Positions 11,201 to 62,129 of a DNA stretch of 64,000 nucleotides are shown one piece after another. The position numbers and the translations under genes were made by a program. Under the pieces are notes generated by a model that worked only from the letters and a program-made list of their open reading frames with translations, was not told where the DNA came from and searched no databases. Origin of the DNA: Takakia lepidozioides (Eukaryota > Plantae > Bryophyta). The DNA lies in contig CM060733.1 in the NCBI GenBank assembly GCA_030704615.1, forward strand, positions 6,882,001 to 6,946,000, in the 5' to 3' direction. Numbering within the stretch: position 1 is the stretch's first letter; every line of letters begins with the position of its first letter.

Positions 11201-12589
11201 ACAGCTCCCCAGCTCCGATGGGATGGGCCCAGTAAGCTGATTTTGGTATAGTTGAAGAATCAATAAGTTTGACAGGCGACCCAATTCCCGAGGTATGCTG
11301 CCTGTGAGGCTGTTGTTTCCCAAATAGAGATATTGAAGAGCTGAGCAGTTTCCCAGGCCAGGTGGAATGATCCCTGAGAAGAAGTTGTCTTGGAGAGCAA
11401 GATCATACAATTGCGCCAGAGAACCAATCTCTTTTGGTATGTTACCAGAAAGCGAATTGCTGTACAAGAGAATCTCATAGAGATTTGGGGCGTTCATCAA
11501 TGTCGGAGGTATGAAACCCGTGAAAAAATTGACGTGCATCCAGATGACAGAAATGTTTTGGAGTCTCCCCAAGGCTTCCAAACCTGCAGATGAAAGGTTC
11601 AAAGAAAGATTCAGTGCCGTATACATGTACATATTGTATACACGAATACCCAGGTGCCCACCTCGTAGAACTTGAAAAAATCTTCCTTTCCAGCAATCTT
11701 GATAGTTAGAACGTACTCATTGACCATACGGTGGGGAAGTTGGCTAGACTTTCCGAGTACAAGCTGTACAGGTTTTAAAAAGTACTAGGATCACATGCCC
11801 GAAAACCATTGCAGGTAGACAGAAAGAGGTGAAATTTCGTTTATCAATTCAGTTGGATGCTATGTGCTATCTGATTTGGAAGGCCTAGGGTGCATGATAT
11901 GTACCTGAAGTGATATTTCCTGAGAGTCTATTGTCGTAGAGGTAGATCTCCTGAAGACTTACGATACTGAAGATCTCTGAAGGAACAGTGCCACCAAGGA
12001 GGTTGCTTGGTAGGCTTAGCACCTGGAGTTGCTGACAATTACCCAGCTCATTTGGAATAGTGTCGGAGAGACTGTTCCAATCCAAGTACAAGAATTGGAG
12101 CTCACTGCAATCCCCTAACTCCTTTGGGATGAGTCCAGACAATCTATTGTACGCCAAATCGAGAGTGTTCAGTTGACTGCAGTTACCTAACTCCCTTGGA
12201 ATGCCTCCAAAAAGCTGGAGACCACTCAAAACAAGCTCCTGCAAGCTTTGAAGCCTACCAAGGCTAGGAGAGATGGTGCCTGAAATTTCTTGCCCCGTCA
12301 AGTTCAGTTTCCACACTGTGTAACCATCCTGCAGGCATGAGACACCTGTCCAATTGCACGGTGATTGATCTGAGGCACGCCAGTTGTTGAGTGCAGGAGA
12401 TGACTTGTTGAGGCCATTCTTGAACTCCAGTAGTGCCTCCCCATCCTTGGACACCCCTTGCGCTCTGCCGGCTGCCAAAATCACTAACATTGCTGCAAAC
12501 AAATGAGCGGCAGCCAGAAAAGAAGTGACACCCGCGACCGATCCTCCCAGATAGGATTGCATGATCAGAGATGGTCTTGTGAGAGTCAT
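8213..12589 (-). CDS. LRR receptor-like kinase, subfamily XI (PEPR-like); 3 exons 12589-11905, 11583-9043, 8550-8213; about 1187 aa
   Basis: Signal peptide, LRRNT (W..SDQSPCNWTGVSC), many LxxLxLxxNxLxGxIP repeats, TM segment VVVAIVLSSGVIFVLGCGLVAWYIF, and an RD kinase (IGKGAHGTVYK, HRDIKSSNILLD, DFG, GTYGYIAP|EYG). Both GT-AG introns keep the frame; the exons total 3564 nt. Confidence 0.95.
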
Positions 12590-39749: not shown

Positions 39750-40783
39750 TAACGTTCTGGCTGCAGTAGTCCTCAACCTTGATGATCCGGCTGCGTGGAC
39801 ACAAGCATGTGCCCAACGGGCAGAGTTGTTCAAGAGAGTCATGCCTATTGCTTTTGATTATCTTGCTATTGCCCAACACCGAGACACATTGAGGTGTGCC
39901 ACTATACGTGGAGGGGGATATCGGCCAGGTGTTCGGCGTTTCCACCCTGGGGACTATGTGTATCTGCAGCAGACAGCGCCTAAGACCTTGGATATCGCAA
40001 CAGGACATGTGATTCTAAGGGTCAGGGAGGTGTTGCCTTCAGGAGTGTTGATTCTGGAGGGTCGAGATGGCATGGTATGCAAGGACCATGTACGCAATTG
40101 TGCGCCATGTCACCTTCCATATGTGGATGGGAGGATAGATCCCAACCTTGCAGTGGTACCTGCAGGGTTGCGTTGTATGCTATGTGGGCATGCGCGTGGT
40201 GCCGCCACTATGTTGGCGTGTGATCGATGCTCAAGATGTTGGCATATAGGATGCCTGACACCACCTCTTGAGAGGGTTCCTGATGGAGATTGGTTATGTC
40301 CACACTGCTTGGAATAGTGGTAGTGGATATGACTAGTGACAGCTAAGAAGACATGGGAGGCCAAGCTCATAGAAGTCAATACCCGATCTCAGGCTCAAGT
40401 TCATAGGTTGCAAGATGGCGACTAACGATGAGGCAACTCTTGTACCCGGCCTCTTGATCTATCGAGTTGAGTGTAGTAGGGACAGTGGTGGAGGACTTAG
40501 TGAGGTTATGGCCACTATCACATCTTATGGCTACCTGGACTTAGAGGGACCTAAGCGCCAGCTAGGGGGGCGATTGTGATGGACTAGTGGCGGCCTAGTG
40601 ATGGACTAGTGGCTGCACTAGTGGTGGCTAGTGGCAGCCTAGTGGTTGGACTAGTGGCTGCACGAGTGGTGGCTAGTGGCAGCCTAGTGGTGGACTAGTG
40701 ATAGACTAGTGTTTGGTGTGCATATGTGTTGTGTGGTTTTTGGACAGCGATGTAGTTGTGTAGCGATATGTATGCGCACGACA
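39750..40783 (+). mobile_element. 5'-truncated Ty3/gypsy element: integrase C-terminus with PHD finger, PPT and 3' LTR (40575-40783)
   Basis: ORF 39709-40317 ends CMLC...MLACDRCSRCWHIGCLTPPLERVPDGDWLCPHC (C4HC3 PHD). PPT AGGGGGG precedes the LTR. Confidence 0.85.
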
Positions 40784-41080: not shown

Positions 41081-41332
41081 TGTGATGGACTAGTGGCGGC
41101 CTAGTGATGGACTAATGGCTGCACTAGTGGTGGCTAGTGGCAGCCTAGTGGTGGACTATTGGCTGCACGAGTGGTGGCTAGTGGCAGTCTAGTGGTGGAC
41201 TAGTGGTTGTCTAGTGGCAGCCTAATGGTGCACTAGTGGTGGACTAGTGATAGACTAGTGTTTGGTGTGCACATGTGTTGTGTGGTTTTTGGACAGTGAT
41301 GTAGTTGTGTAGCAATATGTATGCGCACGACA
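41081..41332 (+). mobile_element. Solo LTR of the PHD-gypsy family
   Basis: TGTGATGGACTAGT...GCGCACGACA with no internal region; the flanks TCTAT and AACCA do not match. Confidence 0.8.
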
Positions 41333-41499
41333 AACCAATGTATTGCAAGTTTTCAATTGATGGATTAAAACGTTGAATGGAATAAGGTTGGATTTCAAAT
41401 AAATATGTGAATTATGTTTCAAAATATTTAGGGATCATTCCGAAAGGTTCATATAACAACCAAATATTGTGGAAGAGTGTCATGTAGATTCAGCTATAA

Positions 41500-42300: not shown

Positions 42301-42997
42301 GAGGACAACGTAAGGAGGCCCCAGAAGTATTGTCTTTAGAAGGTCCTAATAAGATAAACAGACCCAAGATAAATTGACGTGAGATGACACGGAATAACGG
42401 GTGGCAAAGCAAGGTTCATGACTGATTAGTGACGAAGAAAATTGAGAAGAATCTTAAGATAATCCGAAAAGACAATAAAAGAAATGTAACTTTATAATTG
42501 AAGCCAGACTTACAGAAAGCTATTGACGAGTAATGGGAGAAGATTCACAAGATTCAGAAGCAGTAAACCGCGAGAAAGCCTGTCCATTGAAGCGATAACT
42601 TTCACAAATTGCCATGCGGTTTATACTCAGGACATTTTCTAAACCAATCATATTGAGCCCAACATACGACCATGTGGACCGAGAATGAAGGAGATGGGCG
42701 AATTTGTTGAGGATAAGACACTTTGGTGAGAACCAGAGAACCAAAAGAAATGGGTGTAATGTGAGAGATGAACTGCAAAGAGAAGGAAACAGTGACATCA
42801 TAAAAGCTAGGAACTCCGGATGATCACTTGAGGTTCCTGAAACATTACAGAGATGAGGTCCGGAAAAAACTGGTGGCTGGCAAAAAAGGTAGATTAATAT
42901 TTGAACACGTGAAGAGAAACAAATGGAGAGTGGAGGTAAAACATTAGTTTTATTCTTGAAAACATGTCGAGGAGTGAACCTCCACAATATGTCCTTG

Positions 42998-43808
42998 TCA
43001 ACCTTGTTCTCCGCCAGAGGTTGCATTGTCTTCATTGTCTGACTGTTGATTGGTCTCATCCAAATTTGCTCGTGCTTTCTCCGCCTCCACCGCGGTAATT
43101 TTTTTAGAGCTATTACGTATCGTGTTTTTTCTGGCGGGCATTGTCCAAACGACAGAGTTAATGTGAATCCACTGAGGGGGATCATCTAGATTGAACTCTC
43201 CAACTTTGGACCAACAATCTCTGTACCTGTCCAAATCGGAAGAGCTACCTTCTTTCTTGGGTCTTTACCATTGGACGTGAATCTTCTTAAAGTTCTTGGA
43301 TCCTCTGTCGCGGACCACATCCGATATTGTCATCCCCATCCAGACTGGAAACGTCACAGTATCTACTGGTCGAACCAAGATGAAGAATCCGTTCTTAATA
43401 TCCTTGAACGGATTTAGAGGCTGCTTCGGTCTATCACACCAGGGGCCACAATACGGTTCCAGGACTTCATCTTCTTCCGACAGATCATCATCTGCAGGTG
43501 TATGGATTCCAGCTCAGTGGTGGTTGACAGCCTACTTGGTTGAGGGCCAAAAATCCTCTTTTAGCGCGATTGAATATCGTGATTATCCAGGAATGGGAAG
43601 ATCAAGTTTTGCAAGGATTGCTTTCCAGTATTGATCATACTACTGTATCATGATGTCACGATAATGATCGTTAAACAACATCCCCTTCTTCCAGAACTCC
43701 CTGTATTTTTTAATTCCAGTTTTGATAAAAGACTGTTTATCGGATGAGTCATCTGCCACACCCCAAATTGGTGTTTTTTTTACAGCCCTGGGTTGTACTG
43801 CTACAGGC
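42998..43808 (-). pseudogene. Sola-like transposase copy 2, 3' part (displaced by LTR insertion)
   Basis: Minus strand PIWGVADDSSDKQSFIKTGIKKYREFWK and RYRDCWSK...KARANL align to copy 1 positions 3570-4300. Confidence 0.85.
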
Positions 43809-44495
43809 TGTCAAGGACGGGAACATGACTGAACACAAACAAGAGATAAAACTAGAGGTACAATGCTAGATAAGAAGTCAAGGTCGGCGTGGCCGAATGC
43901 ATGATGAGTAAATATGATTCAATGCGATCTTTATAACAATGAACAAGAGTACAAGATATTGGAACACGACTTGAATACTGGAATGCTGGAAACTGGACTG
44001 GAGTACCAGATACTGGAAACTGGGCTAGAGTACTGGGAATTGGAAACAAGAGTAGCTTGAACTGGTGCTGGTGAGACTGAAGAGTGTCCAGTCTCGCCTC
44101 CTATATATACTGAGTACTAAGAAGCTTCCACAAGAAGCTTCCCCTATGGAGGTTTCTTGCTGGAGAAGTTTCCAAGATTAAACAAAGGTTTCTTGATGGA
44201 CAAGCTTCCTTAAACAAAGGAGGTATCTTGATGGAGAAGTTTCCTGCAAATGAAGCTTCCTGAGTAGTTTCCCAAGTTACTCTTGGTAATTTGGTAAACT
44301 CCCGATAACTTGATAAGTAATGGTAAATCATGGTAGATCATGGTAAATCACGATAAGTCATGGTAATATTTGGTAACTTGGTAACTTTGTAACTTCTGGT
44401 ATTTACTCCTGGTGAGTTCTTCTGGGCTATGTCCGTGACACCACCCCCTCCTCTAGCGCCGAGTTCCTCGATAAGCGGTAAAATCTTGGACTTGC

Positions 44496-45005
44496 TTAAA
44501 GTTGGAGAAAATCCAAAATCCGACGAATGGTACTTGCCAAGTATTCGGCTCTTTGTTCTTGACTCAAATGATTTATAGGTCCCTGCAACCATCGATAGTG
44601 TCCAACACCTTGAACTTGGGACCACGCAGTGATTTGAGCATTCTGATTTTCGAAGCTGCCTTCAAACATGATTTCGTTGCCCTCTCGGTCCAAAGCCTCA
44701 ACCTCCAACATAATTATCATACTTCGAGTAGGCTCCACTTGCCGTTGTACGGGGTTCAGACAAGGAAGTACGCGTCGTATTGGTGGCTCATCGTCTCGAG
44801 AGCGTCGGCGTGATGTTGAAGGTCGTGAGAGTCGGAATGGCTGATCTGGTAGCTGGGTAAGCGACAACTCCAATGTATCTGGTTCCTGTGACTCCATACT
44901 GCCAATACAAGATGCAAGAGTGTTGGAAGTGTAGCTATATATACTGATGTGTGGTGCTTCTCCCTCCTTAGCGTGTATCAGGTACATTGAATGTGAAGTC
45001 TTCAC
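44496..45005 (-). CDS. Extra ORF of unknown function between the chromodomain and PPT of the outer gypsy element
   Basis: Uninterrupted 169-codon frame (MESQEPDTLEL...RRILDFLQL from the internal Met), in sense with pol. Confidence 0.4.
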   Translation of the reverse strand: MKTSHSMYLIHAKEGEAPHISIYSYTSNTLASCIGSMESQEPDTLELSLTQLPDQPFRLSRPSTSRRRSRDDEPPIRRVLPCLNPVQRQVEPTRSMIIMLEVEALDREGNEIMFEGSFENQNAQITAWSQVQGVGHYRWLQGPINHLSQEQRAEYLASTIRRILDFLQL

Positions 45006-45091
45006 CTTGAAGCTAACTTGGCTAACATCATCGTTGTGACGTCTTATTGATGTGTAGCTCGGGGCTTAGCTGGATATCGTTGATGAAACTC

Positions 45092-46380
45092 TTAGACTTT
45101 GTCAGATGCATTGACGAGGTTGGATGAAGGTTCCCACGTTCGTTCGCTGATGTCGTAGCCTTTCCAATGTACGAAATACTCAAGACGTTTATACTTGATG
45201 CCATAGTCGAGGACTTCGTCGACTTCATACTCAAGTTCTTGATTGACTTCGATTGGTGGAGATGGTACGGAGATTTTCCCTGGAATATTCGATGGATGAT
45301 ACAACTCCAATAATGAAACATGAAAGACTGGATGGATGCACATACTTCGTAGGAGTTCAAGCCGAAAACTGACCGGATTTATTTGTCGAATAATTTTGAA
45401 TGGTCCCAGGCGTTGATAATCCAACTTTCTTGATGGTCGCGAGGTTTGTATGTCTCGTCGAAGAAGCCACACACGATCTCCGACCTTGAACTGGGGTTGG
45501 AGTTGGCGACGTTGATCTGCATACTCCTTGTATTGTTTTTGAGCTTCTGCGAGGTGGGATGTAAGCTCCTTGTGAATCATAACTAGATGAGTAGCAAGGT
45601 TTTCTGCAGCAGGGCTTCCAATAGTTTTCATGTGGAAAGGGTTTGCTCGAGGATGATGACCATAATTGGAGAAAAATGGAGTTTGTTTGGTCGAAGAATG
45701 TATAGTGTTGTTGTAGGCAACTCAGCCAATGACATAGCTCCAAAATCTAGTTTACACGTTCGGTTTGACTATCAGTCTGTGGATGATTAGCTGTAGAGAG
45801 GTTGATCTTAGTATCCAATATGTGAAATAATCCCCTCAAAAAATTTGATATGAACTGTGGTCCTCGATCAGATACGATGTCCTTCGGGAGTCCATGAATG
45901 CGGTAGATATTATTGAGGAAGAGTCTTGCAGTTTTCTCGCCGGTAACCGTCTTATTACATGGAATGAAATGTGTCATCTTCATAAAACGATCTACAATAA
46001 CAAGGATTGAATCGGTGGTCTTGGAAATTGGAAGGTCCGTAATAAAGTCCATAGACACGGACGACCATGGGCCCTCGGGAATGGGTAACGGTTGAAGAAG
46101 GCCGTAAGATCGATGTCGTGGTCCCTTCGCTCTAGCACACGTGTCACAAGATTTTATGAATTCTTTCACGAGTTTTCATATCTGCGGCCACCAATAATCC
46201 CTGGATATCAACTCCAATGTTTTGTTAAAGCCAAAATGTCCTGCAGCCGGAAGATCATGACATGTTTGAAGAATTTGAAGTCGTGTAGGTCCTGGAGGTA
46301 CATAGAGAAGTCTTTTGAAGTAAAGTAAGCCATCTTTGAATTCAAAGTCGTTTGCGCTGTACGATAAATTATCACCAAGA
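45092..46380 (-). pseudogene. Outer gypsy integrase and chromodomain
   Basis: HDLPAAGHFG...CDTC zinc finger, SMDFITDLP, IVSDRGPQF, HPQTDSQTERVN, RLGPFKI, HPVFHVSLL and a chromodomain. Confidence 0.9.
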
Positions 46381-47193
46381 TAATTCGACGGACCTTCAAG
46401 TAAAAAATTTTCCCGTCTTCTTCGTGCATGCAATGAGGGATTCTTCCGTGGGCTGCTAGTATCGCTGGTGCTCGTACCGACACTCTTCTTAGCAACTGGT
46501 GGCACCTTTGTGATGAAAACTCACACTCAAACCGGCTATCAGCTTGTCTCTAATCCCCCTTTCCACGAGGTAACCGGGTAGAGAACATGTTGCGGCTTAT
46601 GGTTTGGAATACTATGTTCCTATTCTGAACCTACACCTGCACCTGCATCCACCGCAGGCACTCCTATGGTCTGCTGGTCATCAACCCAACCTCACCATAA
46701 GATAAACAATGATGGTCTACTAGCCTCACCACCGACAACACGCTCTAGGATTGGCCAGCCACAATATTTCCGGCACAACCACCTATAAAAGCAAGTGCCC
46801 AAACCAAACTAGCATGGCGCACAGTCAAGCATGCATGTGTGGGAGGAGGATCCAAACACATGAAACTCAAACAACAACACCTCCCACAGCTTAAATCAAT
46901 CGATCTCCTTGCGGCTTCAATAAACCTGCAAGATGGCAAAGTCTCTATCCAAACTAGCTCTGCCTCCGCTTACGGAAAAACTTTGGCCTACAAGAATGAT
47001 GGAAGACTATAGAGAAGGGAAGCTAAAGCAATCTCTAAGCCCAGAATGCTCTTATCCCATTACTCCCCCTATCTTCATACTCACTCTTGCTCAAGCAATA
47101 GATAAGACTATCCTTAAAGAACCTCTCAAATCACTCTCAAGAGCCCTCAAATTATTGCCTTGAACTTCTGAAATCAGCCCTCAATCAGCCCTC

Positions 47194-47998
47194 ATCATCG
47201 AGTGGATTAAACCAACTTCGGTCCGAGATGTACAATGTTTTCTGGGCTTTGCAAATTTTTATAGAATCTTCATCAATGACTACTCCAAAATTGCTACATT
47301 GTTGACACGACTCACATGGAAAGACAAATTTGTATGGGACGAGAAGGCTGACCAGGCATTTGAAATGCTCAAGCAGGCATTTACAACGGCTCCAATACTG
47401 GTACATGCAGACCCATCTAAACCATTCTTCTTAGAAGCAGATGCTTCAGACTTTGCACTTGGCGCTGTACTCTCGCAATACGGTACAGATGGCCGATTCC
47501 ACCCTGTTGGTTTTCGTTCTCACAAATTTTCCGCTGCGGAGATCAATTATGAAATCCATGACAAAGAACTTCTAGCGATTATCGATGCTTTTGAGGAGTG
47601 ACGACATCTATTGGAGGGAACTAAACATCGGGTCACTGTCTACACCGATCATAAAAACCTCGAATATTTTATGAGTGCTCATGTTTTTGAATCGACGTCA
47701 AGCGAGATGGAGTATGTCACTAGCAAGGTTTGATTTTGTTATTACCTACCGTCCCGGACATCTTCAAGGAAAACCAGATGCTCTTTCTCGACGATCGTAT
47801 CTTGCGTAAAAAAAATGGGATGCAGTTTTTGACCAACAAAAATCCATTATCTTGAAACCAACAAATCTCCAATTGAATATGCTATCTATGTCCACCTATG
47901 ACGATGCAGAGATTATAAAGGACATTCAGGAAGCATTGAAGAGCGACCATTTTGCTACGACACTACGAAGTCAACTAAATCAACCTCGAGACAACCCA
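47194..47998 (+). pseudogene. Inverted RT-connection/RNase H segment of the outer gypsy element
   Basis: Plus strand EWIKPTSVRDVQCFLGFANFY, EADASDFALGAVLSQ, NYEIHDKELLAI and TDHKNL; opposite orientation to the flanking pol. Confidence 0.85.
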
Positions 47999-47999
47999 C

Positions 48000-50152
48000 A
48001 TGTTGTATTTTCTTCTGATCCATAAAGACGCCTTTGTCGGAAATAATATAGCCCAGAAATTTGACCTTAGATTGATGGAAAAGACATTTATCCAACTTGG
48101 CATATAGTCCTCTTTCTCTCAATTTATCAAGGACAAGGCGTACATGGCGGCCATGTTCTTCTTCATTCTGTGAAAATATCAAATGTCGTCCAAATAGATG
48201 ACTACAAAGTCATCTAAAAATTCTCGAAAGATGTCAGTCATCATATGTTGAAAAATTGTTGGAGCATTGGTAAGATCGAAAAGCATAACACTGTATTCAA
48301 AATGTCCATACCTTGTTCGAAAAGTTGTTTTCCATTCGTCTCCTTCTTTTATCCGTACAAGATTATAAGTTCATCTCAAGTCGATTTTGGTGAAAAACTT
48401 CACTCGTCCCAGCTGGTTGAGAAGCCCAGAAATCAGCGGCAACGGATAACGATTCTTGATTGTGACTTTATTGAGACCGCGATAGTCGACACACATGCGT
48501 AATGATCCGTCCTTCTTTTTCACAAACAAGATAGGCGCCCCCACAAGTGATTTTGAATGTCGGATGAAGTGCTTCGACAAATTTTCATCAATGTATTCAC
48601 GTAATGCAGCCAACTCCGTCTGGGATAAGTTGTAGATTGGGCCGAATGGTGGTTGGGCTCCTTCTTGTAACTCAATTGCATAGTCATAAGGTCGATGTTC
48701 TGGCAACATGTCTGCATTTTTCTTCTCGAAGACATCTTTGAAATCTTGATATTGAGCGGGTAATATTGAAGTACATTTGTCTATTGTGGTCTTGATCGGA
48801 GTCGCATAAAGTGCAAATGCCGCCTCTTTTTTGGTAGCTCTCATGAAAGCTCTAGCTCCAAGGAATAGGGGTTGAATACCTTTGATATTTCTACATTTTT
48901 GTCTTGCAGAATTTTTTCGCGATCGCCAGTCGATGTCGAGATTGTGAAGTACGAACCAGGGAAGTTCAACGATCATAGGATTCGTTTGAGACTGGATGAC
49001 ATTGAGAACAATATGTGATGCTTGATCTTTAAGCTTCACTTCAAGTGGTTGAGTTTCATGGTCCACATTTCCTGATGCTAACGGTCGTCCATCGCTGACT
49101 TCAACGGGGGCCGAGGGTTTCTTCTTTACGAGCGTTAAATTGTGTTGCTTCGCAAAGTTTTTGTCCATAAAACAAGGTGAAGCTCCTGAGTCCAAAAGTG
49201 CTTCTACAACGATATCTCGATTTTGCATTCTGATTTTTCGAACACTTGAGTTGTGCCCCGAGCTTTGAATCTTCTCTTGTTGGGGCAGTTTAATGCTATG
49301 TGATATTCTTCTTCGCAATAGTAGCATAATCCATTCGACTTCCGTCTTTGTTTTTCTTGTGGCGTCAATGGTTTGAATCGGATAGCATCAATCTGCATAG
49401 GATCACTACTGGATGTCTGATGGATCGTTGTATTTGGTGTCTTAGTAGTAGTGACATGATGCGTCGTCGACCATCCAGATCGCTTCTCTTGACGTCTTTC
49501 GAACAAACGATTATCGCTTGCAATGACTTGGGTGATGAATTCACTCAGTGTGCCTCTTCTCATTCCAATCGAGGTTGCACGCAAGTTGTCGAAATTCGGC
49601 AACATAAACAGAAGCAGGACGTGCTCCTTGTCGAACATTTCGCATCTTTGTTTCTGCAACTCTCTCTCTATCATTCTCTCTAAACGTTGCAGTGAACTCG
49701 GACATGAATACTTCAAAATTATATAATAAATGCGATTTTTTTTCTAATAGCGGTGCAAACCAAGATAGGGCAGTGCCTGATAGAAGGGTGCCCACGAATC
49801 CCACTTGAATACCTTCATCGGGGTAGCATTGTGGATGTAGTCGTAGGAACAATCGTACTTGTTGAACAAAACCGCGAAATCTTGATCTCGTCCCATCAAA
49901 TTTCTCGGGCATGTTGATCTTTGGTTCTCTCGTAATTTGTTGAAGAGGAACCGTTGCAGTAGGGACTCGTATGGTTGAAGATCCATTGTTCGACTACTTT
50001 AACTCTGAAATTTGTTGTTGCAAATTGTGGAGAGCGTTGCCAAGATCTTGAGACTGATCAGCTTGCAATTGGGCGGTAGATGTACGAAGTTCTTGCATCT
50101 GGAGCTGAAGACTCTGCAATGTGGTGACCATTTCCGCAAATGTGCCTTCCAT
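48000..50152 (-). pseudogene. Outer gypsy gag-protease-RT
   Basis: ORFs 49541-49912, 49204-49716, 48371-49327 and 47955-48182; [22 protein letters not shown], with frameshifts. Confidence 0.9.
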
Positions 50153-50199
50153 CTTAACTAACCAACGAACAAACTTTAGTCTCGCTAAACTGCGCTAGC

Positions 50200-53100
50200 A
50201 TGCATTCTACACACTAGCCAACCACACCATGCATCACCATTCCAAACAAAATAGGAAGCACAACATTTGGAACCCATTTCCTTTATTACAAATTTTTGTA
50301 CAATACAAGTTTTTGCAATCGAATTCCTAAGCTAGCTAAACCGGGCTAAGCATGCATTTCCTCCCCCACGCTCCAAGGTTGATGTCCCCATCAATGCTTC
50401 TTCCGATTTTGAGGTCGCCCTTCGAAAACTGCAACCGTCTCGGATGCGTTTCCCATTTCTGAGGCACGCACCCAAGATGCCTCCACATGATGATAGCCCT
50501 TCCATTTGACGAGATACTCCGTTTCTCGGTTCTTGAACCTCCTCGACTTAAGTACTGCCTCCACCTCGTACTCAGGTTCATTTTCATGATCCAACAGCAC
50601 AGGTGGCGGACACAACACTTGATGCCAATTCGGACGCGCTTCATCTTTGAAGTAAGGCTTCAAAAGGGAGACGTGGAATACTGGATGCACCTTGCTGTTT
50701 GCCGGCAGCTCCAATTCATACACATCCTCATTCATAACCTTCCGGATGTGAAAGAGTCCCGCATATGGAGGTACGAACTTTGGACTCACTTCCGGAGGTA
50801 GTCGGAAATTCTTGATGTTCAACCAGACCTCCGTGCCTGCCTCAAACTTCACTTCCCTCCACTTCCGATTCGCCTGCCTTTCATACCATTTCCTAGCTTT
50901 GGCAATGTTGTGCTTTGCGAACTTCAACAAACGCTCGCGTTCTTCCAGTACCTCTGCTACTGCCGGTTCCTCAACGTCCTGGGCGGCCCAACTTGTCGGC
51001 ACCAGAGGTGCCTTTCCATAGACCAATACGAAAGGGGAAACTCCCGTTGCGGAGTGTTCTGTGTTATTATAACAGAACTCTGCCGCGTCTAAGTGTTCCA
51101 CCCAGTCTGTTTGGTCTGCTGACACGTAATTCCGCAAGATCTGCTTCACTACGGAATTCACTCTTTCCGTTTGGCCGTCGGTCGTAGGTCGGAAGGCGGT
51201 GCTCATCTTCAGCCTCGTCCCCATCTTCTTCCAAAGTGCCCTCCAAAATTTACTCGTAAACTTTGGATCGCGGTCCGAGACAATATCCTTCGCGACTCCA
51301 TGATGCTTTAAGACGTGGGCGAAGTAAAGTCGCCATGTTTCCTGCGCCGTTGCCGTCTCCTTGGTGGGGATGAAATGGCCCATTTTACTGAACCTATCCA
51401 CCACCACCATGATTGCATCGAATCATTTTGACAGCGGCATAGCAGTCATGAAATCCATCGAGACGCTTTCCCAAGTCCCCTCTGGAATCGGCAAGGGTTG
51501 TAACTCGAACGGACGATCGAACTCCGGGATTTTCAAGACTGGAGCTTGCTTCAATTCAGCAAAAGCTTGGCCACAAATGGTGTTCCATGCCTAGACTTTG
51601 GATTTACACAGAAGGTCTGACAGCGGCCCTGTGATCTTGGCGAAATTTCTCACATACTTCCGGTAATAGGAGGCGAGTCCTAGGAAGGATCGCACTCCCG
51701 GGACCGAAGTCGGAGGCTCCCAGTCCAAGATTGCCCTCACCTTCCTGTCATCCATTCTGATCCCATCTTGTGTAATCACATGCCCCAGGAACTCCACTTT
51801 TGTGACCCCGAATTCGATCTTTGAAGCTTTGGCATACAGCTTCCCTTCCCGCAATTTCTGGAACACCCTTTTGAGGTGCTCCAGGTGCTCCTCCTTTGTT
51901 TTCGAATACACCAAGATGTCGTCGATGTACACGATCACAAAGTCATCCAACCACTCCTAGAAAAGGCTGTTCATCAGCGTGCTAAAGGTCGCGGGAGCGT
52001 TGGTGAGTCCAAAAGGCATCACCAAGAACTCATATGAACCATACCTTGTCCTGCACGCGGTCTTCTTCTCATCTCCTTCCGCCACTCGAATTTGATGATA
52101 GCCGGAGCGCAGATCGATCCGGCTGAAATACTTCGCTCCTGCCAACCGATCGAAAAGGTCGTCGATCATTGGCAAAGTGTACCGGTTTTTTATAGTCACC
52201 TTATTCAAAGCCCTGTAATCGACACACATCCGCAGTGTCCCATCCTTCTTGTCTGCGAATAGCACCGGGGCTCCGTAAGGTGACTTACTCGGCCGGATGT
52301 ACCCCTTTGACATTAGATCTTTGAGCTGAGTCTTCAGCTCGACCAACTCTCTGTGGCTCAACCGGTAGGGCGCCTTGGCAGGCGGTTCCGATCCCGGTAT
52401 CACCTCAATCTTGTGGTCAACTCCTCTTCGCGGTGGCAAGCCGCTTGGTAAATCCTCTGGCATCACATCCTGGTATTTCTCCAAAATCCCCTTGATCCAA
52501 TCTGGGCTCGGCTCCCCATCGCCTTCTCCCTTCACTTCTCTAATGTAGAGCAAAAACTGGGGCTCGTGTGCCTCCTCCATGGCCCACTCCCTTGCTGACA
52601 GAAGGTTTATTCGCCCTCCCACGGGTTTGGGCGTTTCCGACACTCGTAAGACCTCGCCACCATTCCCACATGGCAGCGTGACTACTCTCTTGCGGCCATC
52701 TATGACTGCTCCGGATTTGCTCAAAAAGGTCATCCCCAAAATGAGATCCACTCCATCGATCTCGCAGATGGTGAAGTTCTCACGTCCCTCCCAACTCCCC
52801 AGTTGAAGAGGAACATCAAACGCCAACCTTGTCGCCAATTGCGGTTCTCCTTTGGCAGAAGCACCTCAATAGAGGCCCCCGCGTCACTTGTCGGGAGTCC
52901 TAGCTTTTGTGCCGTTGCCGGTGTCATGAAGGAGTGCGACGCTCCTGTGTCCACCAACAACGACACGTTAGTTCCGGATATTATCCCATCCACGAACAAT
53001 AACTGACTCCCTTACGTAAGGCGCCAGTTTCCTGATACAATTCACAAGAAAATTTGCCTACCTTGCAAGTCCTGGCGACCACGCTTCTACCAAGCGACTG

Positions 53101-54990
53101 ATGGTATCTTCCGACAGCTCTGTGGTCGCCCGAGTCATGTTCAGTTGCCGGGGCTTCGTGCACTTCTTGGCCATGTGCCCGGGTCCCCGCAATTGAAACA
53201 CACTCCATCAAAGGTCACCTTTTGTCCGCCATAGGCCGCTCCACCCGCTTTTCTTCGAAGCACCGGGTGCCGCCTTGATTGTGAAGGCCCTCCCTTCGAT
53301 TTCCACGTGCCATTGTCGCCGCGTGGCCTATCCCACTTCTTTTCCGGTCGGAAGGAGTCACCTTCCCGCCGGGTTTGTGGTTCAGCTCCGTACGGCCTTG
53401 TCTTTCACCCTTAGGGACATCTGAGAAACATTCAGCCCTCTCAATTGCCTCGTTCAAAGTCTTAGGTGGCTTCTCCTCCAACTTCCGCCTGGCCCATGGG
53501 GCCAGTCCCGCCACAAAGTTGAAGACCATTTCTGGTTCTGCCATGTCCGCGACTTCGAGCAACAGCACATTGAAAGCCTGAACGTATCCCCGAATGTCGT
53601 CTGTTTGCTTCAAATTCCTCATCTTGTCCCGGGCGAGCCAAGACGCTTTGAGGGGCATAAACTGCCTCTTCATCAATTCCTTGAACCCACTCTAGTTCAA
53701 GGTTTCCGGGCTTGGACCTCGGTCGTGAAGGCGTTTCTGCCACCATTGTTGAGCATAGCCCCTCAAATAGGTGGGAACCACTTCCACCCGATCCTCGTCA
53801 CTCAACTTGGCCGCCCGGAAGTACTGCTCTAGCTCCAAGAGCCAGGTGTTGAGTGCCTTCCGATTTCGGACGCCCTCGAAGGTGCCGGGTTCCTTAGGCT
53901 TCACCTTAAACTTTGCCTTAGTGGAAGTGGCATTAGCCGCCTTCAACACGTCTTTCAATGTCCCGCCAAATTGCGCCAACAACCCTTCCCAAAAGGCTGC
54001 CGGCATGGGAGGCATCTGTTGGTCGGTCGGAGCTCTCAGGGATTCCTCAGGCTCCGACTCCTCAGATTCCTCCCGCTCTTGAGCGGCCTCGTTTTCGGAA
54101 ACATGCATTGCTTCCTCAAACGGCCGCCTCGGTGACACGTCGCCCCCATCGGGCTCACCAAGATCATCATCTTTTGGGCCGTTCCGTTTTTGCTTTGGCT
54201 TGCCCGACCCCATGATGAGGCCAACCCCAGAACGATCGCGTACTGAACTCTAAGCTCTGATACCAAGTGTCGCGCACCTCAATTCGGTAAGCTCCCCCCT
54301 CAAGTCATAGTTACTCGCTTGATGCGCGTGCCTAACTCCCAACCTGGCCGCCGGGCCAACTTGGAGCTCCGGCTGCTCACCGGGGCATAACAATCCCCCT
54401 TTGATCTCCCAAAGAACCCTCCAACGATTTGGAACCAGCGGAATTCCCTTTGGTAGTTGGCAGTCCGGAACAGCTCCCCACTCTTTGGTCGCTTTCCGGC
54501 TCGCTCGCTTACTCACTAGTTTTTGGTCACCAACGGGCTTGCACCGTTCTCGGGGTTACTACTCCCTATATATACTTCTGTAGCTGTCCGCGGGGGTTTC
54601 ACAAACAACCCTGCCATTTTATGGCGAACCACCACGAACACCCTCGACTCCCGGTGATGAGTCGCGGTGAGTCTTTGGCCCACCCACCACGGCCCCTGAC
54701 CGTGATGAGTCCCAAGACTCCCCACGACCCCCACCACGAGGTCTCCGCCCCAGGGTGAGTCCTATGCCACCCCCACTAAGTCCCGCTAAGCTACCACCAC
54801 CCCTTGTGGAGGCACCCCCACCGCAACCCGGTGTGCGGGGCTCCACCTAGTGAGCGCCTCCGCCTCCTTGAGTGCCTTGGGCACTCAAGGGTGCTTCAGC
54901 CCCCCATACCTATCGCTGCTACTGCCCCCACCACAGGGGCAGCCCCTCTTGTGTCCCGACCTCCTGCCCTCAAGGTAAAGGGCCGCGACA
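50200..54990 (-). mobile_element. Second Ty3/gypsy chromovirus inserted in the 5' LTR of the outer element; 5' LTR 54268-54990, 3' LTR missing
   Basis: LTR TGTCGCG...CGCGACA. tRNA-iMet PBS TGGTATCAGAGC (complement at 54254-54265). gag 53215-54213, protease LVDTGASHSF, RT YIDDILVYS, integrase and chromodomain 50391-51410. Confidence 0.9.
54254..54265 (-). promoter_or_regulatory. Primer binding site (tRNA-iMet)
   Basis: TGGTATCAGAGC lies two bases inside the 5' LTR end. Confidence 0.9.
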
Positions 54991-55484
54991 ACAAGAGTAC
55001 AAGATATTGGAACACGACTTGAATATTGGAATGCTGGAAACTGGACTGGAAAACCAGATACTGGAAACTGGGCTAGAGTACTGGGAACTGGAAACAAGAG
55101 TAGCTTGAACTGGTGTTGGCGCGACTGAAGAGTGTCTAGTCTCGCCTCTTATATATACTGACTACTAAGAAGCTTCCACAAGAAGCTTCCTCTATGGAGG
55201 TTTCTGAAGAAGTTTCCAAGATTAAACAAAGGTTTCTTGATGGAGAAGCTTCTTTAAACAAAAGAGGTATCTTGATGGAGAAGTTTCCTCCAAAGGAAGC
55301 TTCCTGAGTAGTTTCCCAAGTTACTCTTGGTAATCTGGTAAACTCCCGGAAACTTGGTAAGTAATAGTAAATCATGGTAGATCATGGTAAATCATGGTAA
55401 GTCATGGTAATATTTGGTAACATGGTAACTTGGTAACTTCTGGTATTTACTCATGGTAAGTTATTCTGGGCTATGTCCATGACA

Positions 55485-58105
55485 AAGGCAACTTTGGAGA
55501 TCCATCGGGATTCGACTTCCACATCTTCACCCCACCTTTTTTGGGGAGCCACTCAGAATCAGTAGCAAACTTCTTAAACTTCATGACAGGCCAACCATCT
55601 TTATCTACATAGAATCAAAATACATGCATTTTTGTTTGCCCAACTAAAGCCTCTTTTCCATCGAGAATGCAACTGTCCACATACGCCTTGACATCTGGTA
55701 TCTCTTGAATGATTTGAGGAATAAATTGCAGATCTTGAGAGATCATAAAAAACCTCATAAGATCGGAGAGAACATAGGTGCTGTTTTGCTTTAGCTTCTT
55801 CGATAAATAATTGAAATTGATGTCCTCATAGGTATGGCCAACCATGAGAAATCCCATCTGAATCTCCTCAAACATTCCTCTCGCAGTTAGGAGCGACAGA
55901 AAAGCCAGCATCCACCTGTTTTTGTTTTCCTTCACGCAGTTGTCCAACTGCAGGTAGAGTCTTTGCGGAAGAGGGACTTTTCCTTTTTTCTTCTCCTTAT
56001 TGCCGAAAGGTTTCAGGACGTCGAGACGCCTCGATTTACCCTTCATGAGAGATTTGAAAAAGAAATTCTGAGGTGGGTAGTCAAAGATGTTACGACTTTC
56101 GCGGCAAAAGGGCTTCTCTAGTTGGCGGAGGCATCTTGCTAGAGAGCCAATCGTGAAGTTTGGGTCTCCCGGCCAGAAGTCCAGAGAACACTGTCCATAG
56201 GCTCCGTCCTTGTGGCCGTGGGTGACCATGCCGGTCAGCGAGAGTGAAAGCTGACCTAAGCCGGAGACCATCTTGTTCGGCTTGTGCAACCTTGGAATAG
56301 CTATTTTCCGATGATCCATCTTGTCATGAATGATGCAGATGAACTCAAACGGCATCATAGCTGACTCATTCCTCCAGCTGTGATAGAGTCTCCTGCAAGA
56401 CTCCTGAAGCCTGAGGTGCTTATCAAGTGCTTTCTTGTGCGAGGCCTGCTCATCGCTATGTTTGACCGACTTTTTGATTAGGTCTTTGAGCATCTCACAG
56501 TCTGTGCATTTGGCAAACGTGCTACCATTTTTTCTAGCCTTGACATTGGGAAAAATCCGTTGTCTGATTCTGCTGACGGCTGCATGGGAGATAGGCTTCA
56601 ACCCACATATTTTATTTACCTACAAGACAGACACTGGGGAAGAAACCTCGCGCGATCGCCTGAGCTTTAATAGTGAGAGGTCTGATACATTGCGTGGAAG
56701 CAAAACAGCGAAGGTCCGAAAAAATATAGAATTCGGAAAGTGGTAAAAATAAGAAGAACTGATCTCATTACACTCCTCACGAAGTTTTTTCCAGTTCAGT
56801 TCAGGTGGCAGAACTCGAAGAATATCTCTCCGTCGTCTCCAATACAACAGGTCTTATGACGCAAGAGATCGGAATTTCTGTTTACAATCAACATTAAGTT
56901 TCCTTCAGCTTGACGAGTTTGGGGCCGTTTCACTCCGTGCAACGATGTAACCACACCATTTCTGCTTAGTTTTTTGTATTCCACGTAGGTTGAACGACCG
57001 ATTCCGTGAATTGTCCACTGAGCTATCTCACACACATCAACGCCCTCAATGGTTATATAGGCCTTTGTCGAAACCCCGTCGATTCGATGAAGTCTTTTGG
57101 GCACATCAAAACCAAGCTCTCTCCGTTTGTCGTAAGAAGATCCCCAATAAGCAGTCCGGATAACGAGTGTTTTTCTCCAGTCGAAATATTGGCAACACTG
57201 TAAATTGCAACATTGTTTGCAAATTGCTGCTGACTTCTCGAACTGTCTGCAAAGAGATGTGAGAATTTATCTTTTAGGAATTGTCTTTTTTCGGATTTTT
57301 TTTTGGTCTGTTGAAATGTCGGTATGCTGCTTTTTCACACCTTTCTCATTGTGACCAATATTTGTTTGTTCCTTGCTATTGATGAACCTATGAAACTCAT
57401 GTAACAATGTCCTGCCACTATCAATCAACCAAGTTTGTGTCAGTGGCCAGTTCACGAGTGGTCGAACTGCCATTCAAAATCCTTGTAATGAGCGTGATGT
57501 TCTCCAACTTTCTCACAAAATATCACCTCGCCAGGATGACATGCTTGAATTCTGCCCTCGTACAAAGCACTTTGTTCATCTCCAAGGACAATATTGGTAC
57601 CCTTTTTAATTTGTAATTGTTTTCTAACTTTTATCTACAACGAATATATTGTACCCTATATTTTACTCATTTTATTTCTCCAACTGTCTATATCCATAGC
57701 AACATTGTTATTCAGAGACGGCCTTGACATGTGAGATTCAGTTTGTTCATTGAATTTTGGATCGGAATCATCCGCAGATGTCAATTCGACCTCCGAGAAC
57801 TGAGGATCCTCATTGTTGGTGTTGATGTCAGTTCCGATATCTTTTTGAATTTGCACAACATCCCAAACGACAGGTGTTCTGATTGCTTCTCCCAAAGAGT
57901 CCGCATCCATGTGCGGATATGGCAACGACACAGAAAAATGTGCTGGATCGCAAGACACTATAACAACAGATATTGTGGACCCGTTTAGCTGTCGTCCGTG
58001 GCAACTTCCGCAACCAGTCACGTTAAGACATTCTGCTGTTGCGATGATAGAGTTCGAGCCCTGAAGAGCGAGGAAAACTTATTGACCAGTTTGGAACAAC
58101 GACAT
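55485..58105 (-). pseudogene. Sola-like transposase copy 2, 5' part and catalytic core
   Basis: Start MSLFQTGQ*VFL aligns to copy 1 MILETGQKVFL. Core LYLQLDNCVKENKN...FLMVGHTYEDI. The intron is at the same position as in copy 1 (about 56621-56763) but its donor reads AT. The segment ends at PDGSPKLP at the LTR. Confidence 0.85.
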
Positions 58106-58800
58106 TTCCACGAACCTCGTGGGATCGCGCGTGTATCCTACAGTAGAGATGTTGGTGATTAATGATTTGGCACTATATCGATGGACACTAAGAAAGAGTG
58201 AAACAATAAGTTACTGAAGTTTGTTTAGAAAAACTGAGGATGAAGATGAAAATGAACCTGTCGCGATCGTCCGCGTGTAGGGTTATAATGATTTGGGAAT
58301 TGAAAATAGAACTCGGACTCTCGGATTATGTACTAGAATGTAGAACGTAGGTCTGTATTGGTCGAAACAAAAATTTGTAGAAAATCAAAGGATTTGCTAA
58401 AGCTACGACCCGAATGTACAACATTGTCTACGACTCGATAACAGAAATAGAACAATCTCGACGGGCATTCGCGCGTGGTTCAGATGGATGAAATGAAGGA
58501 CGGATGAATAATGGTAGACGAGTTTCGGATGACAAATAAGAAAATGGATAAATAAATGAAAACATGGATGAACGAAACAGCTGTAGTGCGAGTGATCATT
58601 CGAAGTACATAAAACGGTCGGGTGTGTAGGGAAGATCTTTGCAGACAGTGGATGGGAACAGAGGAGCAGAGAGACCGAAAAGAAACCCAGATGAAGTGGA
58701 GAGGCTCTCAATATTGACAGAATTACAAAGGAAAGAATGAACGTAAGACAGACAGTCCTGAAGATCAGCGAGCCAGAGCAACTGAGAGGGAAAAAATGGC

Positions 58801-61552
58801 ATGCGTGCACAGGGCAAGCTCTTATACGGATTGTCAAACAATCTGTACCAGTTGCGAGTTCTCAATACGAACCATCCCGTCTATCTGGCGCCGAGGAATG
58901 AACATGTGCCTACCCAGGTGTGTGCGATGAAACCAAGGCATCAGAATGATATTAACAATTCAAAATTCTTCGTCATTGGAGGCCAGCAAACAATTATGGC
59001 TGCAAAGGTATAGTACATCAACGTTTACCTCGCGCGATCGCGCGTGCTTCTATATTCTTCTCTGCTTTTATGAGAATCATCTTTCGGATATTTCTTTGTG
59101 TTGCCTCATTATCATTCTTGCGCGATCGCGCGTGCTTCTACTAGATGATTATATCAGATGCATCAACGACTTGTTTCTAAGAGATGCATAGCATGATAAG
59201 CAAGCACGCGCGATCGCGTGTGCTCCTTTCTAATTCAATTCCATGCTGATGTAAACATTTTCCAAATCAGGAACTCGTGAAGGAGATTACTGACTGGGAG
59301 CAGAGGGACTACCCAGCCGAATGGCCATCAATTATTCTTTGGTCAGATAGCAATAATCGATTGCTGAAAATTTCTAAGCTCCTGAACGACCCAAATAAAG
59401 CCCGAAAATTCGACACAACATTCCCGGAGAAAGTTGCTCACGCCAAGATGTATTATGAGTTGAGGGGGAAGCCCAAGAAATTCAACGATAACGTTTCCAA
59501 ATCTGAAACCGTTCAGTGGAAGGTAATCATTCAAACTTCCTTTATTGTTTAATGTTTTGTTGTACATTCACTAGAACTGTGTGGCCCTGTTGTGTGTTGG
59601 CCTGACATGCTGTTCTTGTTGACCAGGAATTTCTGCAAGTCTCACAACTTATATTGGAGATGCTTAGCGTTAAGGAGGCCATGACCTTGGTCCTTTGCGA
59701 TGACGATGTTTGGGAGAAGAGGCAGGAGGTTTTCAGAGAGTGGGAGAAATGAAACCTCTTGGACATTAACGGAAAGAAGCACAAGGATGTACAATCGCAG
59801 CTCACAAAATCTGCTTTCTGCAAACTCCAAGGATTGAACCCCCTTCAAATGAAGAAGGTTGCGCAGAAGATTTTGGACTTGAAGATATGTGTTCGTGGTC
59901 CTTACAAGGGAAAAGACCCCAAGATTCTCTGCATGTCCAATTACATCGATCGAATAAAGGACATGTAGTTTATCATCGATAAGGTCATGGTGGTATTGGG
60001 ATTTTATGCCAGGAGCAAGCAGCATCCAGAGCCGTACACAAAAGCACAATGGCTCGAAGTGAAGAAAATGTACAAGTTCAACAAGTCGGAGTTCGAGACA
60101 TTCCGATCGAAACTGGGGGCCAAATACATGAAAAACAAAGTGAACATGAATATGAAGACCGAGAAAGTGAATGACGCTTTCATCAAATACGTGCTTTCAT
60201 GCAAGAAAAGGGTTGAAGATATGGAGAAAGAAATGGGCAACCTCAAGGATACCTTCAAGTCACATTACCAATGCATAGGAGGGAAGCGGAGGTTCACGGA
60301 TGCCAAAACACAGTTGAAAATTATGAGAAAGAGGGATTTCATTAACATCGCAATGGTGTTCGTCAACACAGTCTGTGACGATCACTCAGTTGTTTTCATG
60401 CAAAGAAATTACCAAGAATATTTTCGATGCGTTCTTCGAACAGCAGCTGAGCTCTAAAGCATTTGTCTTCTTCTCGACACAGAGGTCATTTTCCAATCTG
60501 GTTTTGTACATAAGGTTTGGCGAGGGGTGGGACAAGTATATTCTACTTCAGGGGTTGTATTTTCCTGGAGAGTTCGACAATCTTTACAAGAGCCGGCCAA
60601 AGTCTTTTTCAAGGCCACTCATGTGCCTTGATTACGTATTTCCTGTTACAGCTGCCCAGATTGAGAACCACAAGGAGCACCTGCAGGGGGTCTTGATGTT
60701 CAGCCCCATTAAACCAGTGATTAAGGCTCCAGACACTGAGCTCACGGAACACGAGAAAGATTGTGCCGCTTATGAACACGAATTGCGGGCAGAGTCCAAC
60801 GACTACATTGCGTCCTTGTTCTGTGGCGAAGGAATGCCGGCTGTCAATCTTTTTGGAGGAGTAATGTTAACATCGGCTCTCCACGTAAGCAATTCCATTT
60901 CCATTTCCAATTCGATTTTCTTTTCCATTTCCATTTCCGAAACACATTCATCCTATTTACTCAATGGTTCGCATCTTTTGCAGGCCCTAGGAACGTCCGA
61001 GTCCTTGATATAAACCTGAAAAAGAAATTATGCGCGAATAAGGTTGCCGCAAACTACACACTCCTCCATACGGAGAATGAGGACGGAACCGAGGTTGGTG
61101 ATGACACAGGGGGAGGGCAGGAGACCCACAGGCACAATGGCGAAGAAAATGACGACGACGATGAAGATGACGAACAAAGAGATCTGGAGACAGAAGAAAA
61201 CCAAAAAGAAGGTGACGGAAACGAAACGTTGGACAAAAATGAAGAACTTGAGAGAGGTGAGGAAGACAAATGTGACTACCAACCCGATGATGCCGTCAAT
61301 AATTTCTTGCAAGAGGAGACAAAACAATTTGAGCAAGGCAAAAATCCACCAGCTGAACAAGCAGGGAGGGTATTATCCGAAGAAAGCCACCATCCACAGG
61401 CCTTGACAAATACCGGTGAAGGAGACAATCTAGAGACAACTGTGCTGGGTAGTTGCAAGGTTGAGTGGATAAAAAACGGCAGATCCTGCTCCATGAAAAG
61501 CCATGACAAAAAAACAAAAGTTGAGGATACTATCCCAAAATATTTTTTTTAG
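58801..61552 (+). pseudogene. Multi-exon gene divergent from the Sola-like transposase: putative ParB-like domain, degenerate beta-class DNA methyltransferase fold and acidic tail
   Basis: GT-AG introns 59008-59270, 59523-59626 and 60885-60983 join the ORFs (two internal stops, two frameshifts). Motifs FFVIGGQQTIMAAK; HELRAESNDYIASLFCGEGMPAVNLFGG...SALH; RNVRVLDIN. The gene model is better supported than the domain calls. Confidence 0.6.
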
Positions 61553-62129
61553 TGATAGATAATGGTATACTGAACATATTTAGTAAAGAGTCCTACCCCA
61601 AATATTAAATATATAATTCATTAAATATTTTAGTCTATTATTTAGAGAAATTATGAAAAACTAAAACTTAGAGTTTACAAAAACATTTCAATATGACACC
61701 TAGCCATTGAAGATTATAGGTTTTTATACTTCTAGAAAAAAAATGACACCCAAAATCCAAAAAACAAGATGAACTATGGACTTTTCAAAAAACGCCTATT
61801 TGTTTTACATATATTAGTATGAATCAAATGACAAATGATTTTGTCACTTCAAATCCATACCTATGATGTGGACCAAAATGACCACCTTATGTCCAAATTT
61901 CAATGGAATTCACTAATGGCACATATGAGAACTTGAGTCCATTGTAATTCCATTCATTGCGGTAACATTCCACAATGACGGTGTTCAAAAGTCCATAGCG
62001 GAGTCATTTCTTATCGGATTCATGATTGGAGAGTTGCTATAGCTGCGTATTGAAGCTAGGAATCCAATGACATATATATTTGCTGGTTTTAATGAGTTAA
62101 TTCAATTTCAATTGATGACACCATCAATT

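Follow-up and report, generated by a model that had tools for sequence, protein, structure and literature searches.

A probable relic of a two-gene DUF7869 transposon in Takakia lepidozioides, with a putatively ParB-like and methyltransferase-like accessory gene

What kind of element brings a transposase gene face to face with a gene resembling a ParB-methyltransferase fusion in a land plant? The locus that raises this question lies in a 64,000-nucleotide stretch of the Takakia lepidozioides genome (contig CM060733.1, positions 6,882,001 to 6,946,000; hereafter the window, with coordinates counted from its first letter). An earlier note, drawn from the letters alone, placed between 55485 and 61552 a Sola-like transposase gene and, head-to-head with it on the opposite strand, an accessory gene with a ParB-like N-terminus and a beta-class DNA methyltransferase-like C-terminal half. 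We consider it probable that the window holds a dead, fragmentary copy of a high-copy, cut-and-paste, two-gene DUF7869 transposon whose accessory protein is ParB_N-like and beta-class methyltransferase-like. This interpretation is partly supported, because the link runs through a protein family of Riccia sorocarpa and the ParB and methyltransferase matches of the window itself are weak (P 0.045 to 0.23).

The transposase is represented by three minus-strand open reading frame (ORF) pieces, 57656-58021, 56796-57104, and 55615-56601. The last of these matches PF25273 (DUF7869) with an E-value of 1.4e-34 and 119.8 bits against a gathering cutoff of 26; judged by this Pfam match, membership of the DUF7869 family is established. 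The core domain extends over 55486-56601 and carries an in-frame stop at 55615-55617. The middle exon (56761-57104) shifts frame near 56833, and its tblastn match is divided between two frames (56951-56835 and 56832-56761). The N-terminal region (57295-58099) is also frameshifted, and aligns in three tblastn pieces (41% identity, E 1e-43) with the 277-residue N-terminal ORF of a second, better-kept DUF7869 transposase gene in the window (911-4372, plus strand; ORFs of 277, 69, 412, and 225 residues). Homology to this better copy extends as far as 58099. The core of the second copy, 2426-3664, matches PF25273 with an E-value of 2.4e-40 and shares 72% amino-acid identity with 55486-56601. Database searches with the transposase core returned 138 relatives at E<=1e-5, with PF25273 present in 120 of the 120 listed. 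Among the matches listed, the nearest are ENA, JGI, and Logan proteins at 50-58% identity; those of Riccia sorocarpa are about 28-44% identical and those of bivalves 28-30%. The Sola1 label would follow solely from an architecture in common with the Ectocarpus element Sola1-1_Ec32.

The gene does not end at 55485, which the earlier note took as the left border of the pair. Alignment to the 911-4372 copy stops at 55486, picks up again at 43792, and ends at 42965; because of this break, 55485 is the edge of an insertion rather than the end of the transposase. The C-terminal part (42965-43792, minus strand) consists of 43792-43685, which corresponds to residues 377-412 of the core of the better copy (75% identity), and 43639-42965, which corresponds to its C-terminal exon (56% identity, E 7e-77). 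The intervening 43793-55485 is a long terminal repeat (LTR) retrotransposon insertion of about 11.7 kb, foreign to the element and delimited by the broken alignment and by a pair of LTRs (43942-44440 and 54990-55484; 93% identical over 499 bp). The transposon copy predates this insertion, whose LTRs have since diverged by 7%.

Three-frame translation and splice signals yield an accessory gene of four exons on the plus strand. Exon 1 (58801-59007) ends in KFFVIGGQQTIMAAK at the position of the ParB-like motif, and exon 2 (59271-59522) would hold the second half of the ParB-like region. Exon 3 (59627-60884) covers the middle and the methyltransferase-like region, and exon 4 (60984-61549) reads RNVRVLDIN followed by an acidic tail. 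Intron 1 (59008-59270, GT..AG) contains three 88-bp repeats, each with a CGCGCGATCGCGCG palindrome; intron 2 occupies 59523-59626 and intron 3 (GT..AG) 60885-60983. About 0.7 kb separates the ATG at 58801 from 58099, where transposase homology on the opposite strand ends, so the genes stand head-to-head across a divergent intergenic region (58100-58800) with two degenerate palindromes at 58118 and 58462. A spliced gene at this distance, with both partners decayed, is what the earlier note had described; the observation is confirmed with corrected borders, and every peptide string that it quoted is present in the frame given for it. A 1116-nt contig of run X6, which we guess to be RNA, skips 60886-60986 and thus intron 3, a skip seen in no DNA contig. 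The 5' end of the model may need revision. Sister-copy contigs follow the window to 58840 and then go on with GTATGAGG..., resembling a splice donor, and an ORF beginning at 58737 reaches the same point; the true exon 1 may be 58737-58840, with sequence lost here in the window copy. A start at 58737 resembling the histone H3 tail was considered and rejected (p 0.19).

Public runs of the same organism placed 587 DNA contigs on 57900-61600 at 85-99% identity, and the family is therefore high-copy in this genome. These sister copies also expose the damage to the window copy. Exon 3 is interrupted by in-frame stops at 59750-59752 and 59966-59968 and shifts frame by +1 near 60412, exactly where same-organism DNA contigs are one nucleotide shorter. 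Exon 4 has a two-nucleotide insertion near 60985, exactly where five such contigs are two nucleotides shorter. Sister-copy contigs span 57900-61447 free of gaps, many of them covering the intergenic region. By contig placement, likeness to them stops at 61444-61447, short of the ORF end at 61552, a position that can no longer stand as the right border. The transposase is split by the retrotransposon and has a stop and frameshifts, and the accessory gene has two stops and two frameshifts and loses its likeness to sister copies near 61447; neither gene can work in the window for these reasons, and the copy is a dead relic with no function of its own. Immediately beyond the gene, at 61546-61600, contig depth rises about tenfold and new contigs start, as a different and very abundant repeat abuts its end.

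The identity of the accessory protein is approached through the liverwort Riccia sorocarpa (assembly GCA_046195345.1). The family there comprises 83 annotated Riccia proteins, all named solely as hypothetical, and P0189, an ENA protein (84 in all, P0121-P0204). Pfam N6_N4_Mtase is matched by 39 of 55 Riccia members at E<=0.1, with a best E-value of 3.3e-6; the three members with scores given (18.8 bits, 15.8 bits, and P0189, flagged as weak) fall under the 26.7-bit cutoff of that family. The family profile matches the beta-class N6-adenine methyltransferase M.RsrI with an E-value of 2.7e-7, across motif X to motif I. P0194 was modelled by AlphaFold from the family alignment, with a mean pLDDT of 50 overall and 70-80 in parts of the domains. 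In Foldseek this model retrieves beta-class DNA methyltransferases only (RsrI at 1e-7, then CcrM, MboIIA, M1.HpyAVI, PvuII, and bdelloid N4CMT), and residues 407-665 align by VIA-align with Z scores of 11-13.3 to MboIIA, CcrM, RsrI, PvuII, and N4CMT. On this model, the Riccia family has the beta-class N6A/N4C methyltransferase fold, with motif IV before motif I. Motif I is partly kept (TVLDFFSGG). The (D/S/N)PP(Y/F/W/H) motif occurs in 0 of 84 family proteins, which have D(L/V)THP at the motif IV position. The fold is kept, and the chemistry is probably absent because the DPPY-type motif is lacking. That no DPPY/SPPY-type motif is present had been remarked for the window gene, and this extends to 84/84 proteins of the family.

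The N-terminal domain of P0194 (residues 25-215) is tentatively ParB_N-like. An Atlas structure search returned ParB_N-type clusters in five of the eight family sets listed (TM by query 0.47-0.60, with a mean model pLDDT of 0.54); four of the five carry Pfam ParB_N and one is ParB by name only. The Atlas feature search for the same residues ranked fungal DUF3723 proteins first (0.95) and a ParB_N cluster at 28. In fungi, DUF3723 proteins are encoded by conserved accessory genes that Starship giant transposons carry and whose function is unknown; this feature search works with a protein language model, and there is no match at sequence level. The domain is of low confidence in the AlphaFold model of P0194, where methyltransferases filled the structure match lists. 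In ParB/Srx proteins the nucleotide-binding motif that follows the central strand bears an Arg, as in GERRxR (ParB), GCHR (Srx), and DGQHR (DndB-like). The Riccia motif, SGQHSSRAQQ, retains both a His and the Arg.

How does the window gene relate to this family? The middle region gives the clearest answer. A hidden Markov model (HMM) built on the middle block of the Riccia proteins, searched against the 1669 six-frame ORFs of the window, placed 59753-59965 (E 0.0013) and 59606-59749 (E 0.016) at ranks 1 and 2, the two being collinear. Alignment of these two ORFs to Riccia by hhalign gave P of 3.5e-3 and 2e-4, and by these comparisons the middle of the window gene is truly homologous to the Riccia family. 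The length and order of the window gene also match the Riccia protein, with a window protein of about 750 residues. For the ends, the best local alignments fall at collinear ParB and motif I positions. Exon 1 aligns KFFVIGGQQ with Riccia VFLAISGQH (hhalign P 0.09; shuffle p 0.056), and exon 2 residues 31-69 align with Riccia YHDISYLDNKNNE..PSFVEC..LR.PK at 32% identity (P 0.23; shuffle p 0.018). The final stretch of exon 3 (residues 147-169 of 60375-60884), SLFCGEGMPAVNLF-GGVMLTSAL, aligns with the Riccia motif I, NNFSSDGTTVLDFFSGGVFAREAL (hhalign P 0.045). We read this pattern as full-length homology with fast-evolving end domains, a claim that is weaker for the ends than for the middle.

The Riccia loci also show the same gene arrangement. 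In L007 (22.9 kb) a DUF7869 gene and the gene of an 805-residue member of the accessory family stand face to face on opposite strands, and past the latter lies a NIF/FCP1-like phosphatase gene. A divergent DUF7869 transposase lies within 10 kb at three of the five accessory-gene loci fetched (L007, L009, and L013), and this head-to-head pairing bears out the proposal of a two-gene transposon. A NIF gene is near the accessory gene in three of the five. These phosphatase genes adjoin the accessory gene at L007 1-657, L009 5482-6959 and 14327-15847, and L012 14127-15516, and some Riccia gene models fuse the two. Residues 1-25 of P0121, P0187, P0191, and P0195 (L007:6657-6806, minus strand) read M(V/A)RTKQTV(R/K)KS(T/S)GGKPP, a close mimic of the histone H3 N-terminal tail.

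Both elements are further marked by palindromes. With 0-3 mismatches allowed, the window contains six copies of the 14-bp sequence CGCGCGATCGCGCG, where chance alone would give 0.19, at 56649, 58118, 58462, 59031, 59119, and 59207. All copies fall within 56649-59220: one in a transposase intron, two between the genes, and the remaining three in accessory intron 1, one per 88-bp repeat, with none elsewhere in the 64 kb. Its 8-bp core, GCGATCGC, occurs 5 times against 0.26 expected. In Riccia, the 12-bp sequence GGGACGCGTCCC is found 20 times in L007, all in 659-13217, the stretch with the three element genes, and 7 times in L009; another 12-bp palindrome of the Riccia elements, GCGATGCATCGC, has 6 occurrences. 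The palindromes are GC-rich and lineage-specific, and those of Riccia have a CG core. Riccia palindromes were seen in introns and spacers of transposon genes at L007 659-13217 and at L009 630-2076 and 8778-13560.

Several results weigh against a two-gene element with a ParB_N-like and methyltransferase-like accessory protein. The accessory gene was searched exon by exon, with the pieces taken separately, and Pfam, NCBIfam, and PADLOC scans of every exon piece matched nothing. In Pfam, N6_N4_Mtase (PF01555) was matched by none of the window pieces, and ParB_N (PF02195) gave no match to exon 1 at E<=1 or to exon 2 at E<=10. Two accessory pieces compared with the PDB by phmmer returned noise alone. 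The 60375-60884 piece found zero matches among 1.84 billion representative proteins in an exhaustive HMMER search, and its single-sequence AlphaFold model (pLDDT 38) is unusable. Two metagenome scans, with 60375-60884 and with exon 2, found no relatives, and an Atlas feature search with exon 1 gave no usable match. The Riccia ParB-block and methyltransferase-block HMMs do not match the window pieces; for the methyltransferase blocks the shuffle p is 0.25-0.30, and shuffled pairwise alignments of window pieces with a Riccia protein reach a z of at most 3.8. Within Riccia, ParB_N is matched by 0 of 55 homologues at E<=0.1 and the N-terminal profile matched nothing in the PDB. The ParB likeness is a lead and not a result, given the low-confidence Atlas model and the lack of sequence support. 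The pairing of accessory gene and transposase is also not universal, because seven loci around other DUF7869 transposases (L001-L006 and L008) show no accessory gene by tblastn and the Riccia block HMMs. The transposases of L001-L006 (ENA, Logan) are about 50% identical to that of the window and that of Riccia L008 is weakly similar; full 10-kb flanks on both sides were available for L001, L002, and L008, and the other four are short contigs of 3.6-13 kb. Finally, the accessory protein is a natural candidate reader of the palindromes, and we purely infer that it, rather than the transposase, would bind them.

At the ParB-like position the window gene reads GGQQTIMAAK, which contains neither His nor Arg and lacks the Arg-bearing nucleotide-binding motif of ParB/Srx. 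The motif IV and motif I positions read VFVNTVCDD and NLFGG, and translation of the accessory gene contains no (D/S/N)PP(Y/F/W) catalytic motif IV. Taken alone, the window sequence gives no statistical support for ParB or methyltransferase identity. What survives of the ParB-like N-terminus first proposed is thus a collinear position and a lead in the Riccia family, but not a motif or a Pfam match in the window exon. Likewise, the beta-class methyltransferase half is carried by the fold of the Riccia homologue and by the collinear motif I, but not by any Pfam, PDB, or fold match of the window pieces.

The alternative that best withstands these data, though we regard it as unlikely, is that the second gene is a lineage-specific orphan ORF. 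It would have only a helical middle module in common with Riccia, with ends that are neither ParB-like nor methyltransferase-like and with the motifs first noticed being due to chance. The empty library searches for all window pieces, the lack of relatives of 60375-60884 in 1.84 billion proteins, and the failure of the Riccia end-block HMMs, with their unremarkable methyltransferase shuffle values, are all as this explanation would have them. It leaves unaccounted for, however, the three pieces that align at collinear positions predicted beforehand (exon 1, exon 2, and motif I), a length and order like those of the Riccia protein, and a divergent transposase and GC-rich palindromes common to both elements.

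Less probable still is that the two genes are not one element, and that a separate mobile or host gene came to lie beside a transposase remnant through nested insertion or gene capture. The window is a mosaic of nested repeats, and neither terminus of the element was found; an inverted-repeat search of the window gave no convincing candidate. At two of the five Riccia accessory loci there is no transposase within 10 kb. Against separate origins stand the head-to-head pair at three independent Riccia loci and in Ectocarpus Sola1-1, and the palindrome confined in the window to the transposase intron, the spacer, and accessory intron 1. Sister-copy contigs also run unbroken across 57900-61447. 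The weakest alternative, an active 4mC or 6mA methyltransferase that modifies its own element as suggested for algal proteins, can draw on the beta-class fold, on the partly kept motif I of Riccia, and on the use of a beta-class N4C methyltransferase, MpDN4MT1, by liverworts (10.1101/2021.02.12.428880), but is very improbable for a family with D(L/V)THP in place of the catalytic motif in all its proteins and a window copy that is a pseudogene with VFVNTVCDD and NLFGG at the motif IV and motif I positions.

Under the preferred reading of a two-gene DUF7869 transposon, intact relatives would have two divergently transcribed genes, one for a DDE-type transposase and one for the accessory protein. 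The latter would begin with a ParB_N-like domain, continue through a helical middle region, and end in a DNA-methyltransferase-like domain of the beta class (N6-adenine/N4-cytosine). In the bryophyte lineages covered here this last domain lacks its catalytic motif, and it most likely would bind DNA or a cofactor rather than catalyse a reaction. By analogy with ParB/parS and with proposals for algal transposons, the accessory protein most likely would bind palindromes on its own element and mark or shield it. A bolder version, which we hold to be unlikely, is that in land plants the protein of these elements and its binding site co-evolve. The site would be a GC-rich palindrome centred on CG, distinct in each lineage (CGCGCGATCGCGCG here and GGGACGCGTCCC in Riccia) and scattered over the introns of the element. 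It would be read by a ParB-like dead methyltransferase-like protein that steers host silencing or transcription together with FCP1-like phosphatases and an H3 tail mimic; such elements would be a possible source of liverwort N4-cytosine methyltransferases.

The closest described counterpart is Sola1-1_Ec32 of the brown alga Ectocarpus, a 21.5-kb giant DNA transposon with a ParB-like and methyltransferase gene on the strand opposite the transposase (PMC12477816, Genome Biol 2025). Its existence makes the earlier assertion that Sola elements are transposase-only outdated. The accessory protein of that element has 1104 residues and was judged able to methylate (PMC12477816). The window has the same opposite-strand accessory layout, the two being likened by description and not by sequence; it differs in its land-plant host, its protein of about 750 residues, the absence of the catalytic motif, and its state as a broken relic. 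A second close counterpart is the set of Riccia elements, with a divergent DUF7869 and accessory gene, a homologous middle region, and GC-rich palindromes in introns and spacers as in the window. Their transposases are about 33-35% identical to that of the window (pseudogene tblastn against L007 and L008), or 33% when the other window copy is compared with P0063. The Riccia palindrome is another one (GGGACGCGTCCC). NIF/FCP1-like phosphatase genes accompany the Riccia elements and some of the proteins have H3 tail-like starts, two features that the window lacks; tblastn of the Riccia NIF/FCP1 parts against the window found nothing.

More distant parallels combine similar parts. Plavaka/KDZ giant transposons of Bostrychia moritziana encode PAG3, in which a ParB-like N-terminus is fused to a 2OG-dependent oxygenase, and adjoining inverted-repeat arrays are proposed as PAG3 binding sites (10.1101/2025.02.11.637652). 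PAG3 likewise joins a ParB-like and a nucleic-acid-modifying domain, but in another transposase superfamily and with an oxygenase instead of a methyltransferase. In phages and plasmids, prokaryotic modules that combine ParB with an N6_N4 methyltransferase (ParB-Tls loci, PMC4738411) have the same fold pair and the beta-class order, with motif I near the C-terminus. Their enzymes retain a DPPY-type motif and are recognised directly by the Pfam families ParB_N and N6_N4_Mtase, whereas the plant proteins fall below the Pfam ParB_N threshold; one prokaryotic genome scan with the Riccia motif I block found no relative. Marchantia MpDN4MT1 and bdelloid rotifer N4CMT (PDB 8s9n) have the same beta-class fold, 8s9n being among the best structural matches (Z 12.6), but are host enzymes with an intact TSPPY-type motif and shown 4mC activity.

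As we read these comparisons, the design is already known from Ectocarpus Sola1-1_Ec32, and the window adds a further land-plant example of it but no novel type of system. Novelty may lie in its occurrence in land plants, in the loss of the methyltransferase catalytic motif, and in the association with NIF/FCP1 genes in Riccia. Published descriptions of the design have so far come from algae (Ectocarpus, red algae, and green algae), and the evidence here extends it to land plants, where both the window family and the Riccia family have no catalytic methyltransferase motif and have lineage-specific palindromes. When a transposon encodes its own DNA-binding and DNA-modifying proteins, the distinction between selfish DNA and epigenetic machinery becomes less sharp, and the accessory protein and its palindrome offer a concrete pair for asking how elements recognise themselves. 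The window contributes one broken copy, and the family merits proper study in bryophytes.

A few further features of the window and of related loci were noted. The retrotransposon contains gag-like ORFs with a CCHC-type knuckle at about 53.0-54.2 kb on the minus strand, and about 150 bp (43793-43941) separate its LTR from the transposase remnant. The roughly 900 bp upstream of the 911-4372 copy, all that the window holds, contain no accessory gene. A repeat with internal sub-repeats of about 70 bp occurs at 1-510, 40259-40783, and 41082-41335. It lies directly upstream of the 911-4372 copy and recurs, 84-86% identical and in unchanged orientation, 1.6-2.7 kb past the 3' end of the other copy. 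Subterminal inverted regions of related elements would show such an arrangement, though the repeat may be unrelated, because it is more alike between its copies than the genes are. In the ENA contig L003, the peptide MDGPSI is repeated in many ORFs on both strands over 1200-5100, upstream of the DUF7869 transposase, which suggests that a single short DNA motif is densely arrayed there.

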